Translations under genes and position numbers: made by a program
Shown here: piece after piece, positions 12,701 to 32,752 of the stretch
Numbering within the stretch: position 1 is the first letter of the stretch
How the letters are laid out: each line of letters starts with the position of its first letter
From: Podarcis bocagei
Lineage: Eukaryota
Assembly: GCA_964188305.1 (NCBI GenBank)
Contig: OZ076898.1
Length of the DNA stretch: 64,000 nucleotides
Direction: 5' to 3' (one strand)
Notes under the pieces: generated by a model
What the model saw: the letters and a program-made list of their open reading frames with translations, nothing else
Databases searched by the model: none
Told to the model about the DNA's origin: nothing

Positions 12701-15700
12701 AAGTTATTAAATACTCTCTTGGGGAAATAGGCAGCTGTGCTAGTTCATACAGGATATGTTAGCATTTGAAAAATAATTAGGTTTGAAATACATTGTCTTA
12801 TCCCAAGCTAGTTAATTTCCCTTACCTCAGAAGCAGAATTGCTCCTTTGCTAGCTTAACGCAGCATCTCCTTCATGAAAACTAAGCAACTTCTGTAGAGC
12901 AGAAGGACAAGGGTTGGGGGTTTTTTTTGGTCAGAGAGAAAGAAGGCTCTGTTAGAGAGGAATCTGAGCACCGAGAAGGGGAAATGAGTGAGCTGATATG
13001 TCGGCTTACTTTTTAATCCAATTTAAATGAGTGTGAAGCTCATTTCCTTACACAAGGACTTCTGTGAAATATTGTAAAGCTGGATGAGTGGTGGATTTTT
13101 TCTTCAGGGCTGCATAGGCTTGTGAAAGAGAGAACGTCTAGTCTTCCGAGTCAGTTGCGCAGAGTTCAGCAGAATGGCCAAGTAGCATCCTACAGCCCTG
13201 AGTGGTATGAAAAGAAGACATAGTAGTAGTCTGAGCAGAACAACTTTACTAAGGCTATTTAGTTAGGTGCATGTAGCAGTCTACTACACAGTATAATATT
13301 ATCCACTTTGATATATCTAAGGATATGGCTTCAAGTATTCATTGCGTTTGCCGCCTAAAAAATTGCCAGTGAGGCAGTGGATTTTCAGAATGCGCTAAGC
13401 CAGCTCATATAAGGAGTCCATAGGGCTAGCGGTCCAGAACTGGTCGTGGGATGGCTGCCTCTCCCAAGAGATGGGCTGCATTGTCCATCATGCACTTACC
13501 TTCACTTGCATCCCCCCAGCTCCATACACTATCATCACCTTCCCGTTCCTGTTTGCTGTGATGTTTGGGGATGTCGGCCACGGAATTCTCATGACCCTGT
13601 TTGGTGTGTGGATGGTGATCCGGGAGAGCCGTATCCTGTCACAGAAGAGCGACAACGAGGTATTGACGGCAAACACACACACACACCCCAATTTGGGCAG
13701 GGTGTGGGGTTGGGAATGAAAGCGAAAGTGGAAGATCAGTCTCCGGCTCCTTGCGAAGTATTTGATTCCATCTTCAATATGAAGAATTCATTGTAATCTA
13801 AAGAATAGCAAGAATTAGCGAGGTCCTTTCCAGGCAGAGTTGCGACTTTTGCAACCTTTAATAAGCAGAAAAGCTTTGCATGCTGCCATAAGGCTAGTAT
13901 GCTTTGAGAGGTACTAGAATTTGGTCTGGAGAATGGCAGGGGTGCAAATAAGCTTCACTTAATTTAGTCACATCTACTGGGAACTGGTTTGGCATTCAAA
14001 TTTGAAGAAGGAAGCTTTGCACTTTCTGGTGTTTTTCTGCCTCCTTTCCCTGGGCAGAGCAGGCAGGCATTTTCAGTAAGTCTCTGTCCGTCTGGATCAG
14101 GCCTGTGGCCTCTCAAGCCCTGGAATAAGGTGGACAGAGATTTCCCTTGTCTTTGGTCGCAGTGTCCTTCTCCGAGGGGTGACAGCGGTGGGGAGGCAAC
14201 AATGTCTTGATTATGTAACTCGTATTTTTTATATCTCTCTCCCCCCCCCCACCTCCGCCCCCAAATTCTCCTCCTCTTGTTTACTGGCCAGATGTTCAGC
14301 ACCATTTTCTGCGGCCGCTACATCATTCTCCTGATGGGTTCTTTCTCCATTTATACCGGCCTGATCTATAACGACTGCTTCTCAAAGTCTCTCAATGTGT
14401 TTGGCTCATCCTGGAGCGTCCGGCCAATGTTTCTGAAATCCAACTGGACGTAAGTTGATGAGATGCTCACAAAGACACAAGGAAGGCCTGTGAAATGCTC
14501 GCTCTGAGCAGTGTGCTAATGCGGGAGGGGTGGGTGGGAAGAGGAGGACATGGCAGGGATGCAGCAGCACCTCCTGTGTGACTAGCGCATTCTCTGTGTG
14601 GAACTAAAGAACCAGAGCTGTTTCCCGCCCCGCCTCCCCTGCCCCCTAGCTGTGCCAAAGATGCACTCCACTATAGTGCCTGTTTTGTACTCCTCCAGTC
14701 ATTCTTTGTTGATAGCTTTCTGCTCTCTTGCCCACAGAGAAGATCTTCTCAAGGAATATCCTAGCCTTCAGCTAAATCCTGCCATTGAGGGTGTCTTCGG
14801 CGGGGCATACCCCTTTGGCATAGATCCGGTAAGAGCACCTGCTTGCAGCTACTGTTCATGAGTAGAGGTGTTTGTTTCTTGAACAGCAAGTGTTGATCAG
14901 GGTGGTACAGTTCTGAATTGTGCCACTTTCTCTTAAGTCTCTTTTTGGGAAGCCACCGTGTAAAGAACTCTCTGCATACAGTAAGCTTAGTAAACCAGGG
15001 AGGAGGCTGCGCTGAACTGTTCCCCTACTGATGTTGCTTTATGAAGGGAGCTCTTTACGTAGGAGAGTATTTTTAAAAAAGACTGAAGCACTACAGTCCT
15101 GAATTACTCTAGTACCTCTTTCAGCTCTGTCTCACAAATTAAGTACATAGGAAGCTGTCTCATGCAGAGTCAGACCATTGGTCAGTCTATCTTAGTACTG
15201 CCTACACTGACTGGCAGCAGCTCTCCAGGGTTTCAGGCAGGAATTTCTCCTAGCCCTACCTAGAGAAGCTGAGGGTTAAGAACCTGGGGCCTTTTGCATG
15301 AAAGGCAGATTCGCTAGAGTCAAATGTGGCATGCTACTGCTGTGGAACGGAAATGCCCTTGAAGTTACTCACCCCTAAAGTGCAAATTGTGTAGTCTCAC
15401 ATCAGGGTTTATTAGTGGGCAGCAAGGTTGAGACCAAAGTTCACAGTGGGGACAGGCTTGCCTTCAATTATGTGGAGAACACAGGGGAGGGAGATCCACC
15501 CAGATCCTTGGAGTATCCTTTACACTCAAAGCCTTTCACAGAAACTGTCTTAAAGTTGTTCCTGTAGCCATGAACACACGGTTAGCATTTTTAAAAATAA
15601 AAGACACACCACGCCATGCTTGGTCTCGAGGATGCTTTATAAAGTAAAAGGAATGTTTCTACGGAGAGCAGATTATTTTGGGTGTTACTGAGGATATTAT

Positions 15701-18700
15701 GGGTCTGGGTGTACTTAGCTGTTTCACTGTTTGTCCTCTTCCTTGGTTCTGAACACCCTTGGGTCTTTGCACTTTGCACTAGATCTGGAATATCGCCACC
15801 AACAAGCTGACCTTCCTCAACTCCTTCAAGATGAAGATGTCTGTCATTCTGGGCATCATCCACATGATCTTTGGCGTCTCTCTCAGTCTGCTCAATCACA
15901 TGTGAGTGTGCTCATTTTAGTTTAGCAGTCAGTAGACAGGCTGAGAAGATGCAGGACCATAGAAAGCTGCCTTATACTGAGCCCAGACCTTTGGTGTGCC
16001 TAGCACAGTACGGTCTGCACTGACTGGCAGCAGCTCTCCAGGGTTGGAGACATATCTCTTGTATCCGTTGATTGAAGGCAGGGTCTTAAATTTCTTCTTT
16101 GCATATCCTCTAGCTACTTTAAGAAACCTCTGAACATCTACCTCGGGTTTATCCCTGAAATAGTCTTCATGACATCGCTGTTTGGCTACCTGGTCATCCT
16201 CATTTTCTATAAGTGGACAGCCTACGATGCTAAGAACTCCATGGATGCACCAAGTCTTCTCATCCACTTCATCAACATGTTTCTCTTCTCCTATGATCCC
16301 AAAGAAAAGATGCTTTATAAGGGACAGGTAGGTGGTTTGGTGAGGGCAAGAGCTGTTTTGCAGAAAGCAGCGCCTTCCTCGTTCTGGCTTTAAGTGTGTG
16401 TGTGTGGGGGGGGGAATCTACTGCTGAGCTGGGAGGGGAAAGAATCATAGAATTGGAAAGGATCCTGAGGATCATCTAGTTCAACCCCCTTCAGTGCAGA
16501 AATATGCAGCTGTCCCGTATGGGGATCGAACCTGCAACCTTGGCATTTCAGCAAGAACTACTCCTTTGCAAACCACATGAAAACATGCAGAAGCTCCCAT
16601 TTGTTGTGAGGTTTGTGCAGGAGCACACACATCTGTATCTGCTAGCATTTATGCAATTTTAGAATACGAGTTTTGATGTAAGAGCAAGTTTCTAGACCCT
16701 GTGGCAACAGGGAAGTGTGGGCAAGTTCTCCTGAGAAAATCTGAAAGGGTTCTTCACTCAAACGCAGGCAGGAGGGCTTAGGGAACTGGATGTGCTTGCC
16801 TGTTGGTGATAATCTCACTCCCTCATCTCTGTTCCCCACAGAAAGGGCTCCAGTGCTTCCTGGTTGTGGTAGCATTGCTGTGTGTGCCGTGGATGCTGGT
16901 TGCCAAACCTCTGGTCCTTCGCCAGCAGTACTTGCGAAGAAAGCACTTGGTGGGTGAATCTGTTTTCCCCTCTTTCCTTTGTAGGTCTTATTTGTTCAGA
17001 TACTAGAGGTTTAGTCTGGATTTCTGCGACGGAGATCTGCATCCAGATGGAGCTCTGTTAGCACTTCAGTCCTAAGCATACTTTCTTAGAATGAAAACGT
17101 ACTGGAATCATTGCGACTTACTTTCAGGTTTAGGATTGCAGTTTAAATCCTGCTTGCAGGCAGAGGCACAGCTGTAATTTAGCAAACAGGCAGCATCTCT
17201 CATGACCACTGGTCGCTTTCTGGATCCATCCGAAATCCTGGTTCATATGCATGCATTTGCCACTCATGGTTGGGATCCACAGAGCTGCTTTAAGTGTGCC
17301 CCAACCCACTGGGATTTTTTTAAAAAACCCTTTCTTTTGACCAGCCGGCCCCTATTTCACAAAAGAGGCTTTTGAATCTCCCATTTGGTTTCAGAAGAGA
17401 TTTGCCCATGTAGAGTGAGACGTTGCTGCTCAAGGGAGCATGAGCTCAAGCAGCGACTTGGGAGTGCGGAACTGGTGTGGTTCTGCTGGAGGAAAATAGC
17501 CTTCCATCAGCAGAGACATTCAGAATGGTTTAGTCCTAAAACCCGTCGTGCAGCTGGTGATGTTAAGCTTTTAAGGACACCAACCTGCTGCTGTGATTCT
17601 CCAGAGACGTGGCGGCTGTGGTGTTCTTGTGGCAAGCTGTTAAAGATGCAACAGCCCTTCAAATTGCAGCTCGGTTAAAGACGCTCCCTCTTCCTTCTCT
17701 GACCATCTCATCTCCCCATGACCCCTCCATTCGTCTCCCTTCTTTTCTCTTTGTTTTTCTCCTCCTTTTCCCCTTTTCTTTCCTTCCATTCGCTATCAGG
17801 AAGGGCAGCCCGTGGAACCCCCTGTCAGCCCAGCCCAGAGTCCGCAGGCAGTAGAGGCAGCGGCGGCTGCAACAGTGAGTGGATTAAAAGATGCCAAAAG
17901 GATGCACATGGCGAGAACGGGAGGTGCCCAGGGGCCTTGGAAAGTATCTGCCCCGAGGAGGAGGAACGGCACAGCTGCCCTTTCCTCGGAAATATACGTT
18001 CCAAGAAATCTCATTCTTTCCAAACCCTACACTTACGTGCTCAGGGGACACAACGCAACCATATAATATGGTTGGATTTCAAACTTTGGTGTGTATGCCA
18101 AGGGTCTCCTGCAGTTGTGCTTGGCAGAGGACTCTAGGCAGTGCTCAAGGGTGTTCCTCCCTCATTTCCTTGGAGTGCTGTCCAGGTTTGTTGGGGCCAG
18201 CCGCCGTTCATCGTAAACTGAGTTGTATATGCGCATGTCTTGGGATGCGCCCAACTCTCCTCTGTGGATGCACACTGCAAGGGAAATTGGCAAGGATGGA
18301 CAACGCTGCCTTATGGGCAGCTTCCTTGTCATTATAAATGTTAATTGTGGAACTCCTAAGTGTCTAAGGAACCTCAGAGTTCCTGGGGCACACAGTTTGA
18401 AAACTACGGTTGCAGCACAAAGAGATTCTTTGCCCTAGTGTGTGTATGTGGGGGGAAGCCCCCTCTTTCCAGATGCCAAGGCCCTTGGCTTTTGCATAGC
18501 TGCCACTTCTGTGGCTTTCCTCCCCTCCCTTTCTTCACAGTCCTCCCCAGGATTTTTGTCTCTCGAGTACGTTTTTAATTTGCATCCCATGTTTTCAGAG
18601 TGCCATAATTGGTGGTGTCTCCTCAGCAATGCCATCCCTTCTGAGTTCACGTCTCTGGCCTTCACCAGTTTCTTGCTGCCTGCTAGCTAATGGTCGCTTT

Positions 18701-20178
18701 GGGAATCCTTGTGGCAGTGCACTGAGTTGCTGGCTGCCCACTTCAGTGCTGTTCTTAATTGCGCCCACAACTCTCTGTGCCGTTGTGACAGTGGTATCCT
18801 ACCTACCGACAATTGCTGGAGAACAAAACAGCTGTTTGCATTTCGGTATGCTGTTGCACTCCAGAAAGTCTTCTGCAGTCAGTTGAATGGCATGCCAGGT
18901 TTTTGGAACAAAGCACGTGATTAGTGCTGTGAAATTGGGGTGTGGTATTTAGCAGTTAACCCGGCAAAAAAGTTGTGTGTTCTACAGTCTTGCTGCGAGA
19001 ACATGGAATTTGCTGCTCATGAAAAATCTGGTAACTTGAGAATTTCTTGCTTTCATGTGGGAAATGGTTTTAACCCTCAAGGCTACAAAGGTGGGCTGAA
19101 GAACATAGGACCAGAAAGCCCATTAGCCCAGCATTCGTTCCAGCTGCTTCTTGGAGCTGGCATGCTTGAAGCTGAAGCTGATAACCTTCTCAACATCTGG
19201 TATTCAGAGGTATACTGCCTCTGAGTATGGGCGTCCCATTTGACTTTCAAGTAACTATCTGTGAAATCGGAAGCCAATGGGATGGGGTGGTCAGGTGCTC
19301 TGCAGCCTGCAGATTCCACAGTATGTCCCGTTAGACTTAGAAACAATATGAGTTTCCTTTTTGCCAAATTTTTATAGAATATATCAAATCTATTTCTTAC
19401 AGCAAAGGGTGTACACACAGACAGATCTATGTTCTTTTTTTAAAAAAAATACTGATTAATCTATGTTACAAAGAATCCCTTATGGACTTATCAAAGTATG
19501 TTGCCTTTAAGAACAACATAGTTATTAATGTATTCCTTCCTAGCATCCGATGAAGGCTGCAGACATTGGAGAGTCTCAAATGGCTGAATGTATGCCCCAA
19601 AAAGGAGTGACTTGGCCTGGCCTGGCCTCCCCATGTAAGGACAGGTCTGGTCTTCCCTGCTTGTGTTGTCGAAGAGCCAGACAGTGTCAGCCATACCCAG
19701 CAGCAGAGTTCAGGAGGCTTTGCGCCCATTTCTTCGCTTGCTAACAGATTATTTATTTCATAGGCCACTGATTGCATCGTTCTCTAGGGAATATTGTGAG
19801 AGTTCTTGCTGATGTTGCAAACATACAGCCTTTTTTTTTTTTTTAAAGCATTTGAGATTCTTGATTCCTGGCTCTCCTTCTCTTACTTCTCCTCTCTCCC
19901 CACCCCTCCAGCCCCTAATCCCTAGTTTCCCATTTTGAGAGGTCCAGTGTCTGGTAAGCTCTCTACTTTAGACTAATGTTGTTTCGCCAGCTTTTGCTGC
20001 CTTTGGATTCATAGCAGAACAAGCTTAGGCTGTTCTGAAGAAGGAAGAGCCCTGGAAAACAGACCAAAGCATGCTTTAGTAGCCAAAACACTTTAACAAA
20101 TTGCTCAGTTCTTGATGCTCAAAAGTGCTGGAAACCTATAATTTGTTGTACTGGTACCCATAATTTGTTGCCTGAGGC

Positions 20179-20227
<49 letters not shown>

Positions 20228-23200
20228 CTTTCTCTCTCTCTCATATGGTAGGGCCAGTTCTGCTAATGGCCCTGCATGCCAATTCCATACTAAAACATGA
20301 ACCGATTGTGTGTCTCCTCTTGTTTTCTCCTCTGTTGTCTGCTTTAGGGGACACTCAATTTTGGTGGGATCCGCGTGGGCAATGGCCCAACTGAAGAAGA
20401 TGCAGAGATAATCCAGCACGACCAGCTCTCAACCCATTCGGAGGAGGGGGAGGAGGTAAGACCTCCCATTCTTTCTTTGTACAACAAACTTTCATTTGGG
20501 AGATGTTACAAGAAGGGGTGGACCTTTTATGACTCTCCTTACATATATTACCAGATCAGACCAGGTCTGTATCCATTTACCCTCTCTTGCAGCTGACATT
20601 TACTCAAGCTAGCCAAAGCAGACTGCTTGGAAACTGTGTTGCCCCAGTAACTGTTTTTCTTAAGACTAGGGAAGCTCAATTTGACACTTGGGAACACTTC
20701 CTGTAGTGTCTTTGTTCTGGCACTTGGAAAAACCTGTGGGCAGCCCCCTTCAAAAGGTGGTTGTAATAAGCTGAGGCTGTGTCTTAAGTTCTCAATAGTT
20801 TGTGGTGGACGGGGGTCCCTTTCAAGGCGGGTAGTAAAGACTTCAGGTCAGATTTGAGGGTCTGTTACAATCTCCTCGCTTCCCCATGGGAAACCTCTGA
20901 ATGGGCTGCGTCACTGCTGCCCTTGTTTCAAAGAGAACTGAACAAGGGTTCTTCCATTCAGTTTGCTTGTCTGCATGGGAGAAGGTCTTCCGATTTTTCC
21001 AGGCAGACCACTATGTCTCAGGGTGGTGGGAGGTTAGCTGTGCAGGTTCTTGTTATCCGCTGTTTGAAGAGGGCATCCTTGTACGCTACCTTTGTGTACA
21101 AGGCAATCTTACTGAGATGGCTTAGACCCCTGAAACATTAATAAAAACTCAAGCATACAGGATCTCTGGTTATAGTTGGTGATGTGGCAGTTCAAAATGT
21201 AAGCCAGTTGAGCAGTGTAATGGGTCTTGTCCTGTCCTGAGGGCTGCTGTCCTAACAGAGGTTTTAGCCTTCATATAAAATGAGCATTCTCAGGGTTCCT
21301 TGCTGGAAAGCAGTTTTAAGTTCTGAGAATAGGCATTGCCATTGGTGCAAATGTATGAACCTGCCATATCTTGAATCAGACTGTTCCACCTAGCCTTAGT
21401 GCTGTCTACATTTGATTGACAGTGTCTCTCCAGAGTGTTAGGAAGTCTTTCCTAGCTCTACTTCCTGAGATCCTTTGGAGAATCCCTTAGAGATGCCAGG
21501 GATTAAATGCGGGTCCTTAATGCATGCAGAGTATGTGCTCTTAACTTTGAGCTTTGACACACACACACCCCTACAATGCACAATGTACACTTCAAGCTTT
21601 CAGAGTTTTTCACAACTGGTACACAAGAAGCACTGTAAAACTAGACTAATATCCCTCAAATTGTGATGATAGGGATGAAACTGAGAGCTGATGGTTTGGC
21701 AAATCAGTCTTGGCCTTCTCTCCCTTGGGGAGAAGTCACAGTTGTTACCAATGCAAAATGAGGTGGAATGCAGCAACAACAATGATAGAGCACAGTTGCA
21801 TTTTAGGATATTGCACTGAAAGAGGATATGCTCTTGTGTTATCAAATGATGCATGACCAAACCAAATATTCCCTTGTGTTTTCAAGCCTGCCGTGGAGGA
21901 GGTGGTAAGCCTGTAGCCAGTTTCTCTGTCTGTCTTTATCCAGATCATTGCTCCCATCACTGTAAACCATTTTGTAGAATTAGGCATATTTGCATCTGTG
22001 ACTTGAAATTCTTTCTTCATCTTTTCATAGCATCTCATTTTGTGATGCCTCCTTCTTGTAATCAGAGGTCAATAATACCCATTTCCATAGAAAACAGCTT
22101 CATATTCATTTAAAAACAAAAGACATGTTTGTTTGAACAGCTGCATGTTCTTAATGGGGACTTTTGTGGTGTGGGTTGCATATTCGTCACTGTTATGTGC
22201 ACAACCTGTGCACCTCAATAATTTGTAGAACAGAATCCCAAAAGTAGCAGAAGCCTTTGGAACGGGACGTGGACATGTTTGTACCTTTATTTTAAAAAGC
22301 CAACTTCCTCCATCCCCTGAACTCCAGCGTGCCCCTTAATTGCCAAATTTCCAATATCCCTGGGGCCTGCTCTCCTGGCTCTTTTTGCTTATTCCCATGG
22401 CCGTTTCCTGAAAATTCTGGCAAGACTTTACAACAGGATCACTCACTGGACAGTTCATGCAACATCTCACTGAGAGACCTGACTACAGACACGCTGAGGT
22501 TAGTTTTTTTACAGTTGCTGGGAGGGAAAACCTGACTAAGCTGAACCATGGTTAGCACAAACACTTGAGCATGCAGGTTCCAGAAGAGGAGATCACAGTC
22601 ACTTTGCTTCTGCTCCCATCCTCTTGTTACTGCAGGTTTGGCCTGAGTGTCATCAGAGCCTGGACTTGTGGTTCGTGCCACTCTAGACAAGCCACAAGCT
22701 ATCATCAAGGTTTCTTGGTTTTACAGCTTGTGGTTTTTCTAGAGAAGACAAACCACAAGCCTGGGTTCAGATGACACACTGAGCAAAACTGTGGCTTAGC
22801 TCACAGCAGTGCAGAGAAGGTGCAAAATGACGTTCTCCCCAAGTTGGTTTATTGTTCTGTGCAAATTGAGCCAATCAGTTGATAAACATTCAGATTAGGA
22901 GTGATGGATGCCAGTCTTCAGGTGGGGTGTTAATGTTCACTAGCCACCTGCTCAAAGTCAACAGGTCTGGACACAATCCACCAGTAAAAGGGGGAGTTAG
23001 TGGACTGGGATTCCACAGCATATTTGCTCCTTGCTTTGACTTCTTTATGAATGACCTGTCACTTCATCTAGCTTTTGTGGAGAGCCACCTCCCTGGCAGC
23101 CAACGATAGCAAAAGTTAAAAATAGACATTTTATCTTTGTGCCTCTGCCAAGAGAAAATGCAGCAACCTCCACATCACAGTCAGTTGATAAGAGGCTCTG

Positions 23201-32200: not shown

Positions 32201-32752
32201 TGTGAGAACAGGGGGCTGGACTAGATGGGCCTTTAGCCAGATCCACTTTAAGGACCCATGCCATCCACCCAGAAGTGCTTGAGAGAGGTGTGGAGCAGGG
32301 CCAGCAAGAGTCCAGAGGGATGGATAGAGGGGCCTGTATTCAGCCACCAGACCTGAGGTTCCCCATTCCTACGTTTGGGCATAGAGCACTGTTATCGCTT
32401 GCATGCCTGAGTCCTTGCACTGATACCCACTCACATTTGCTGCAATTTGAACCTTCTGCAAAGGCAACCGGGAGGGGGGCTGTGGGTTTAAACTTGGACA
32501 GGGAATTGGGATATCTGAAACGGTACATTGCAGTAGTAAAACATGAATGCCACAGAAAGGATAAGGTCACTGCCACTTTTGAATCTCGAAATTCTTCGAC
32601 ATGCCTCCTGAGCTAATGCTTGTTTGCTTCTTGTGTTCCTTTTTTTGTTTCTCACTAGGGTGGAATTTCAGAACAAGTTCTACATGGGCGCCGGGTTCAA
32701 GTTCCTCCCTTTCTCATTTGACAACATCCGTGATGGGAGATTTGATGAATGA
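4223..32752 (+). CDS. ATP6V0A1: V-type proton ATPase 116 kDa subunit a1, spliced gene, 5'-partial (exons encoding roughly the first 141 aa lie upstream of the window)
   Basis: Manually joined GT-AG exons translate to [52 protein letters not shown]...[24 protein letters not shown]...[37 protein letters not shown], matching vertebrate a1. The 16 constitutive exons sum to 2073 nt (690 aa + stop) and all junction phases agree. Confidence 0.98.
5905..6031 (+). CDS. ATP6V0A1: ATP6V0A1 exon 7
   Basis: ttcag|ATTTGTGGCT...GTGACG|gtataa, 127 nt. [42 protein letters not shown]. Confidence 0.97.
6682..6768. repeat. (AAAT)n + (ATT)n microsatellite, probably a retroelement tail
   Basis: Directly visible, about 21 ATT units. 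Confidence 0.9.
7909..7991 (+). CDS. ATP6V0A1: ATP6V0A1 exon 8
   Basis: ttctag|GGGGACTAT...GAAGG|gtaagc, 83 nt. [28 protein letters not shown]. Confidence 0.97.
8135..8228 (+). CDS. ATP6V0A1: ATP6V0A1 exon 9
   Basis: tttcag|ATTCCGG...CAGATG|gtatga, 94 nt. [31 protein letters not shown]. Confidence 0.97.
8790..9110 (-). mobile_element. Degenerate L2-like LINE 3' end
   Basis: Minus-strand translation [21 protein letters not shown]...AFSVTPP...[10 protein letters not shown] is typical of the L2 ORF2 end, followed by an AT-rich tail. Boundaries approximate. Confidence 0.65.
10679..10891 (+). CDS. ATP6V0A1: ATP6V0A1 exon 10
   Basis: cttcag|GTGCTGAAC...GGCACA|gtaagt, 213 nt. [71 protein letters not shown]. 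Confidence 0.98.
11820..11970 (+). CDS. ATP6V0A1: ATP6V0A1 exon 11
   Basis: taacag|GAGCACAGC...AATCCAG|gtaatg, 151 nt. [50 protein letters not shown]. Confidence 0.97.
13520..13659 (+). CDS. ATP6V0A1: ATP6V0A1 exon 12 (start of membrane domain)
   Basis: ccccag|CTCCATAC...AACGAG|gtattg, 140 nt. [46 protein letters not shown]. Confidence 0.97.
14292..14449 (+). CDS. ATP6V0A1: ATP6V0A1 exon 13
   Basis: ggccag|ATGTTCAGC...AACTGGAC|gtaagt, 158 nt. [52 protein letters not shown](T). The luminal N-W-T glycosylation sequon is completed across the junction. Confidence 0.97.
14738..14828 (+). CDS. ATP6V0A1: ATP6V0A1 exon 14
   Basis: ccacag|AGAAGAT...GATCCG|gtaaga, 91 nt. [30 protein letters not shown]. 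Confidence 0.96.
15783..15901 (+). CDS. ATP6V0A1: ATP6V0A1 exon 15
   Basis: cactag|ATCTGGAAT...CACAT|gtgagt, 119 nt. [39 protein letters not shown]. Confidence 0.97.
16114..16327 (+). CDS. ATP6V0A1: ATP6V0A1 exon 16
   Basis: ctctag|CTACTTT...GGACAG|gtaggt, 214 nt. [71 protein letters not shown]. Confidence 0.97.
16442..16553 (-). mobile_element. tRNA-headed SINE fragment with CR1-type 3' tail
   Basis: Minus strand GGTTGCAGGTTCGATCCCC (B box) ... GAACTAGATGATCCTCAGGATCCTTTCCAATTCTATGATTCT (CR1-like ATTCTRTG end). Confidence 0.7.
16842..16949 (+). CDS. ATP6V0A1: ATP6V0A1 exon 17
   Basis: ccacag|AAAGGG...CACTTG|gtgggt, 108 nt. [36 protein letters not shown]. Confidence 0.97.
17800..17874 (+). 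CDS. ATP6V0A1: Putative alternatively spliced 75-nt cassette exon of ATP6V0A1 (between exons 17 and 18)
   Basis: About 110 nt of polypyrimidine tract, then atcag|GAAGGGCAG...GCAACA|gtgagt. Phase 0-0, no stop. [25 protein letters not shown]. Confidence 0.82.
20182..20242. repeat. (CT)n microsatellite upstream of exon 18
   Basis: Directly visible. Confidence 0.95.
20348..20455 (+). CDS. ATP6V0A1: ATP6V0A1 exon 18
   Basis: ctttag|GGGACACTC...GAGGAG|gtaaga, 108 nt. [36 protein letters not shown]. Confidence 0.97.
21887..21904 (+). CDS. ATP6V0A1: ATP6V0A1 18-nt microexon (orthologue of the mammalian neural PSEDEV/PTEDEV insert)
   Basis: gttttcaag|CCTGCCGTGGAGGAGGTG|gtaagc = PAVEEV, phase 0-0, at the expected position between exons 18 and 20. 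Confidence 0.88.
24999..25116 (+). CDS. ATP6V0A1: ATP6V0A1 exon 20 (contains the essential proton-translocation Arg)
   Basis: ttgcag|TTTGAC...GCAC|gtgagt, 118 nt. [39 protein letters not shown]. Arg codon CGC at 25086-25088 corresponds to yeast Vph1p R735. Confidence 0.98.
25663..25834 (+). CDS. ATP6V0A1: ATP6V0A1 exon 21
   Basis: tcacag|AGCTTTCT...CACTG|gtaagt, 172 nt. [56 protein letters not shown]. Confidence 0.98.
26253..26503 (-). mobile_element. 5'-truncated non-LTR retrotransposon 3' end with (ATTC)n tail
   Basis: 14-bp TSD AGTGCATATAGAAT (26239-26252 / 26504-26517). The minus strand ends AATAATAAAATTCATTCATTC. Clade not determinable by eye. Confidence 0.75.
28600..30920. promoter_or_regulatory. 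Candidate intronic enhancer (TEAD M-CAT cluster, E-boxes, CLEAR motif)
   Basis: Nine CATTCC/GGAATG hexamers in 2.3 kb, several CAGCTG E-boxes, and TCACGTGAC at 30257-30265. No recognisable TEs and locally more CpG. Confidence 0.5.
32659..32752 (+). CDS. ATP6V0A1: ATP6V0A1 last coding exon
   Basis: cactag|GGTGGAATTTCAG...GATGAATGA. (W)[30 protein letters not shown]. Confidence 0.97.

Follow-up and report, generated by a model that had tools for sequence, protein, structure and literature searches.

A conserved element, probably a repressed alternative cassette exon, in the ATP6V0A1 gene of Podarcis bocagei

In a stretch of 64,000 nucleotides (nt) of Podarcis bocagei DNA (contig OZ076898.1 of assembly GCA_964188305.1; hereafter the window, read on one strand from its first letter), we analysed a 75-nt element at 17800-17874 (+ strand) within a 3.4-kb intron of ATP6V0A1, the gene for isoform a1 of V-ATPase subunit a. 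The element is probably a genuine, anciently conserved and strongly repressed alternative cassette exon of this gene, which is normally skipped and whose inclusion would lengthen the loop that also carries the neuron-specific 6-residue insert of a1. This reading is carried by the conservation of the element together with both of its splice sites and by the use of its acceptor in RNA; donor use, tissue specificity and any effect on the protein are parts of it that we infer.

Gene assignment and splice-site anatomy

By sequence, the gene is ATP6V0A1 (V-ATPase subunit a isoform a1, Pfam PF01496), because the exon at 20348-20455 matches PDB chains of V-ATPase a1 (6vq6_a, 9bra_a and others, E ~1e-16) over their residues 670-705 and because P0017, a full-length fish a1 protein retrieved by a search with this exon, aligns over sixteen exons. 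The 16 window exons are collinear with residues 141-841 of P0017, and the C-terminus is reached at 32749. The constitutive exon on the other side of the element, at 16842-16949, was aligned to P0017 residues 636-672 with tblastn. These two exons are numbered 17 (16842-16949) and 18 (20348-20455).

The insertion point of the cassette would fall between a1 residues 669 and 670, directly after the sixth membrane helix (after RRKHL, residue 669), and the insert would extend the loop joining the sixth and seventh membrane helices, which we take to be cytosolic in line with published work on the topology and structure of subunit a. A first-pass annotation, made from the letters of the window, had placed the insert just before the helix with the essential arginine. 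This placement had to be corrected, as the insertion point lies about 70 residues ahead of that arginine. The residue is R741 in human numbering, and R741Q is a disease variant (PMC8032687).

The two flanking exons, the cassette and its splice signals lie on the + strand. Exon 17 ends with ...RRKHL in phase 0 and has the donor TTG/gtgggt (slashes within sequences mark splice boundaries), and exon 18, which encodes GTLNFGG...SEEGEE, is also in phase 0. The cassette acceptor, tatcag/GAAGGG at 17799/17800, sits 850 nt beyond the end of exon 17; it is followed by 75 stop-free nt that encode 25 residues, and the proposed donor, ACA/GTGAGTG, lies at 17875-17881. The long pyrimidine tract, the CAG, the 75 stop-free nt and the GTGAGT reported by the first-pass annotation were confirmed base for base at all positions, and its assignment of the exon to phase 0-0 agreed with the phases of the flanking exons and with the translation.

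Upstream of the cassette, a conserved intronic block (17664-17799) holds an AG-free zone of 118 nt (17681-17797), a pyrimidine tract (17685-17796) with 88% C/T and with TCTT and TTCT motifs, the acceptor tatcag, and four YCAY motifs. A branch-point-like CTGAC is found at 17699-17703, with its A at 17702, 97 nt 5' of the acceptor AG, and we infer that it would act as a distant branch point. The four YCAY motifs cluster at ~17703-17735, between the branch-point-like motif and the acceptor. TCTT occurs five times in the 300 nt upstream of the cassette, four of them inside the tract, and TTCT occurs five times in the tract. The pyrimidine fraction in the 100 nt upstream of 17800 was 0.88, the highest among the 4475 AG dinucleotides on the + strand of the window.

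An arrangement of this kind might also arise by luck, as a chance pseudo-exon in which a microsatellite-like pyrimidine tract is followed by an AG, an open frame and a GTGAGT. By chance alone, a frame of 25 codons would be open in some 30% of cases, and a weak 23-nt duplication was detected inside the tract by Tandem Repeats Finder (TRF). The open frame of the cassette taken alone would be weak evidence for an exon, because it runs on beyond the donor to a stop at 18064-18066. However, when sites were required to have a YAG, a pyrimidine content of 75% or more over 40 nt and a GTRAGT located 40-300 nt further on, only two passed in 64 kb, namely the cassette and a true exon at 14292-14449.

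Conservation across vertebrate lineages

Orthologous introns were reached through open reading frames (ORFs) called on genomic vertebrate contigs. Loci L001-L006 represent one species group, and L007, L009 (conspecific with L014 and L015), L010 and L017/L018 represent further lineages; in all of these, the exon 18 peptide has the form ...STHSEEGEE. L016 has ...STHSEDAEE, which is the mammalian form found in the PDB chains; its ORF was present on one contig only, and for this reason we assign it to a non-human mammal. By synonymous divergence (dS), the window is an outgroup to the ...SEEGEE loci.

From the upstream tract through the acceptor and the cassette to the donor, identity was 72-84% in at least six other lineages, while the rest of the intron could not be aligned with the window. 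In a blastn comparison of the window intron with contigs of five other lineages, the island at 17660-17900 aligned at 76-84% and the coding exons at 79-91%, whereas the remainder of the intron yielded only a 23-nt match at chance level (E 0.007). The island is single-copy within the window, and L016, with its mammalian-type exon 18, carries the same island. Because the island aligns like the coding exons while the rest of the intron does not align, this comparison confirms that the cassette is not a chance pseudo-exon. Both splice sites are kept across lineages within it, and a spliced junction was found in RNA (below); an origin by luck is thus refuted, with practically no probability left to it.

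The acceptor CAG/GAAGGGCA and the donor ACA/GTGAGTG are invariant in all seven aligned lineages, with 7/7 nt of GTGAGTG identical, and TCTGACCA, at the branch-point-like CTGAC, is invariant in all seven aligned sequences. The sub-block at 17684-17740, with its four YCAY motifs, has 81-88% identity to six other lineages, and the four motifs are kept in all lineages. Within the cassette, identity to the window reached 88-92% in the last 24 nt and 86-100% in the first 14 nt, compared with 54-76% in the middle. The orthologous cassette measures 75 nt in L007, L009, L010, L016 and L017 and 69 nt in L001-L006; the sole indel is a 6-nt in-frame deletion in the L001 group, and no lineage has a stop. 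Conservation of the frame and of both splice sites, proposed as a check by the first-pass annotation, was therefore borne out in seven lineages, including the mammalian-type L016. A metagenome scan with the conserved 3' end of the cassette returned two contigs only, both from the L009 species.

Four loci (L001, L007, L009 and L010) are mutually alignable. Among them, identity is 0.87-0.91 in the flanking exons and 0.85-0.91 in the cassette, the median for the intron being 0.70, and the pyrimidine tract, with 0.96, is the best-conserved 50-nt window of the intron. Intron identity is 0.80-0.90 for about 500 nt 3' of the cassette (L009:7521-8015). As a separate observation, a TGCATG about 170 nt 5' of the acceptor is common to these four loci and absent from the window.

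Substitution counts were summed exon by exon, with the window compared against the other loci. Constitutive exons 15-18 gave a dS of 0.87-1.86 and a ratio of nonsynonymous to synonymous divergence (dN/dS) of 0.03-0.08, whereas the cassette gave a dS of 0.21-0.50 and a dN/dS of 0.65-0.95. Because its dS is low and its dN/dS high relative to the constitutive exons, the constraint on the cassette is, judged from these counts, largely at the nucleotide level and strongest at the exon ends, with the middle of the peptide apparently free to vary. Conserved alternative exons whose products are flexible segments commonly show such a pattern, though it would also fit a role in the RNA alone. Across eight mammalian-type genomic ORF clusters, identity was 97.5% in the part encoded by the cassette and 66.7% in the continuation encoded by the intron.

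Acceptor use, skipping and competing explanations

Four runs were examined, including X1, an assembly from a close relative (organism A), and X24, raw RNA reads from organism B. X1 is clearly RNA, with a contig across the exon 17-18 junction at depth 130. The cassette acceptor is used in RNA: one 387-nt contig, in this one run of a close relative, splices 16948 directly to 17799/17800, with GT..AG ends and no letters between. The skipping junction, 16948^20347, was found in nine X24 reads (eight start positions) and in the depth-130 X1 contig. The skipping isoform exists and predominates, and inclusion of the cassette in X1 amounts to a few percent at most. Organism A does not differ from the window across 17799-17975, nor another relative, organism C, across 17694-17877, while the surrounding intron of both differs from it by 2-6%.

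It is very unlikely that the island is some other conserved intronic element, such as an enhancer, a non-coding RNA or an alternative last exon that uses a separate poly(A) site. An ATTAAA is present at 17883-17888, 9 nt after the proposed donor, and in some lineages the island lies inside a broader conserved region. However, the ATTAAA is not conserved, other lineages having ATTTAAA or ATTGACC, and an alternative poly(A) exon was rejected on this ground; moreover, the acceptor-using X1 contig goes 270 nt beyond it. A non-coding RNA of the Rfam type was also rejected, since the cassette island had no match among the Rfam families. Finally, the positions without any variation fall precisely on the exon boundaries set by AG and GTGAGT on the + strand.

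Several results weigh against a genuine cassette exon. The X1 contig that uses the acceptor passes through the proposed donor into the intron, as far as 18154, and its mean depth is 5.7, compared with 130 for the skipping junction (~4%). The first-pass annotation had called for reads across both junctions of the cassette; the one of the 16949^17800 type was recovered in the X1 contig, but 17874^20348 was absent from the reads and contigs of all four runs. Its proposal of a regulated exon is supported in part: an exon-like element, a used acceptor and a skipped form are present, and regulated inclusion is a presumed further step. In X24, nine reads skip the cassette and none lies on it, at low power. 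Searches with cassette words gave unspliced genomic ORFs only and no spliced fragment (the lizard cassette with its read-through, 75 residues, had no hit in a length-filtered collection that is poor in short RNA contigs), and the best 120 a1 matches to P0017, all of them teleost, have no insert at the exon 17/18 position. In addition, a dN/dS near 1 between the lizard and the other lineages means that there is hardly any protein-level constraint on the middle of the peptide, and selection on the RNA could account for all of the conservation. A profile search with the cassette ORFs returned 16 genomic ORF clusters, all of which read through the donor, and no spliced fragment.

An explanation that we regard as unlikely, though well ahead of the two discussed above, is a conserved regulatory pseudo-exon or decoy, whose splice sites are recognised without a +75 mRNA being made, the downstream 2.5 kb remaining unspliced. 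The outcome would be nuclear-detained or degraded RNA, or a frame truncated at 18064, and the element would serve not to encode protein but to adjust a1 output or the order in which introns are removed. The only type of RNA molecule seen to use the acceptor, in X1, does retain the downstream intron, and intron depth in X1 was 3.9-6.4 downstream of the cassette and 2.4-2.5 upstream of it, which is what earlier removal of the upstream part would produce; the acceptor-using contig, with its mean depth of 5.7, is close to the former and above the latter. A decoy would also agree with conservation that peaks at both ends of the cassette and in the adjoining intron, with a dN/dS that approaches 1, and with the ~500 nt of downstream conservation in the four alignable lineages. 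However, a non-coding decoy would not need the length (75 nt in five lineages, 69 nt in one) and the frame to be kept stop-free in all lineages. The read-through tails vary in length and sequence among lineages, and therefore there is no conserved truncated product. The assembly contig is, besides, compatible with a minor spliced path. Recursive splicing was rejected separately, as the junction TTG/GAAGGG regenerates no donor.

Proposed regulation, encoded peptide and other a1 inserts

A long AG-free zone with a distant branch point marks regulated exons, often neural or muscle-specific ones. For the cassette exon that we favour, the 118-nt AG-free zone, the distant branch point, the UCUU-type tract and the YCAY cluster would together be the anatomy of a tightly repressed, cell-type-restricted exon, and the strong GTGAGT donor would be part of the same anatomy. 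PTB-type or Nova-type proteins are the candidate repressors, and the motifs of an exon repressed by either type were found in the upstream intron (TCTT/TTCT and YCAY). With PTBP1/2- or Nova-repressed exons, the cassette has in common a long AG-free zone, a putative branch point at a distance of 97 nt, and UCUU/UUCU and conserved YCAY motifs, the likeness being one of motifs alone.

If included, the cassette would lengthen the protein by 25 residues, or by 23 in one lineage, directly after Leu669 at the cytosolic end of the sixth helix. The insert would comprise three parts, an EGQP(V/E)E start, a variable middle and an (L/V)EAAAAAT end; the EGQP start and the (L/V)EAAAAAT end are its constant parts. 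The mammalian-type peptide is EGQPVEAPVSPTPSQQGLEAAAAAT, that of L007, L009, L010 and L017 is EGQ(P/T)VEAQVSTVP(S/N)(E/A)QALEAAAAAT, and that of the L001 group, with 23 residues, is EGQPEEAQGSTNAQALEAAAAAT. The middle, which is rich in Pro/Ser/Thr/Gln and fast-evolving, is probably disordered. Two S-P sites had been put forward as kinase candidates by the first-pass annotation: the first (VSP) recurs in the mammalian type and in one more lineage (P0165), whereas the second is found in the lizard only, and several lineages are without any S-P. The most likely outcome of inclusion would be altered loop-dependent interactions or sorting, and a change in proton transport itself would be less likely. 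The first-pass annotation had conjectured that trafficking or V1-V0 coupling could be altered.

ATP6V0A1, an epilepsy and neurodevelopment gene in humans, is essential for the acidification of lysosomes as well as synaptic vesicles (PMC8032687). The cassette would be a further insert in the same a1 loop, kept since before the mammal-reptile divergence, with flanking intron conserved as well as coding exons, and such conservation would imply a selected, probably cell-type-specific form of the pump. As a mammalian-type genome has the cassette, the question is open to direct testing in mammals. If the element is instead a non-coding decoy, it would represent a conserved control point for a1 expression.

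Four a1 variants are listed in PMC2835735, none with a 75-nt insert, which agrees with the first-pass statement that the classic a1 variants have small inserts only. According to reference 17 of that paper, as cited there, a1 splice variants differ in the neuronal compartment to which they are sorted. In the literature searched, no 75-nt exon of a1 was found to be described. It is quite possible that the cassette is already annotated in database isoforms, because a mammalian-type genome has the exon, and a functional description seems to be missing.

The known 18-nt microexon of a1 (21887-21904; ttcaag/CCTGCCGTGGAGGAGGTG/gtaagc), which encodes PAVEEV, is included in an X1 contig and skipped in X24 reads. 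Because it includes this microexon, X1 is probably neural tissue, and X24 probably is not. The other known insert, encoded by a 21-nt exon, is N-terminal. By its position in the gene, the "ATP6V0A1 exon 19" of bioRxiv 10.1101/2024.10.15.618524 is most likely the 18-nt microexon.

The 18-nt exon, with six residues and neuron-specific, resembles the cassette in that both are frame-preserving exons of the same gene that affect the same helix 6-7 loop, and it is included in X1, where the cassette acceptor is used. It lies 36 residues further on in the protein, whereas the cassette, four times longer, is at the helix-6 end of the loop. The two also differ in architecture: the 18-nt exon is a microexon, whereas the pyrimidine tract of the cassette is very long and its putative branch point is distant. 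Unlike the included 18-nt exon, the cassette shows an inclusion of no more than a few percent in the one informative sample (X1).

At the same position in the protein, another vertebrate lineage has an 81-nt in-frame block directly 5' of its exon 18, which is of the GTQKFGGVRVG type (L011:1275-1355 and L012:490-570). This extension, known from genomic sequence, has an acceptor-like site of its own, tttgtatttagtcccag/ATGAGG, and would add 27 residues (MREAGPAENLETLEQTGTTSPTGLTQQ) between ...KHL and GTQ.FGG. The block is conserved while both flanks are not, and the related ORFs P0011, P0015, P0018 and P0026 differ by in-frame indels. The extension is contiguous with exon 18, as an alternative acceptor, whereas the amniote cassette is a separate exon. 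Homology between the two was not supported, as their similarity was not significant: when Smith-Waterman scores were compared with those of shuffled sequences, p was > 0.04 in nearly all cases.

More tentatively, as a possibility that we rate below an even chance, the cassette may represent a third regulated a1 insert, overlooked in the V-ATPase literature and predating the mammal-reptile split. An upstream silencer block, itself almost ultraconserved, would guard it, and its use would be confined to a narrow cell type or state, in which helix 6 would gain a flexible arm with a phosphorylatable V-S-P where it exits into the cytosol. The junction of exons 17 and 18 may also be a recurrent insertion point, because the unrelated 27-residue in-frame extension occurs at the same position in another vertebrate lineage.

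A few minor observations concern the same intron. In the fish locus L013, where it has only 95 nt (L013:2533-2627), a 13-nt sequence, GAGGGCCAGCCCG, matches the cassette start at 11/13 positions; it lacks splice sites, does not keep the frame of exon 17 and was judged a chance match. A 33-nt piece of the window intron (19191-19223) lies in an X1 contig of 3414 nt at depth 28.8, X24 reads with loose ends were found there, and it is probably part of a dispersed repeat transcribed elsewhere. A (TC)31 microsatellite occupies 20182-20242, about 100 nt 5' of the exon 18 acceptor, and reads appear to be cut there.

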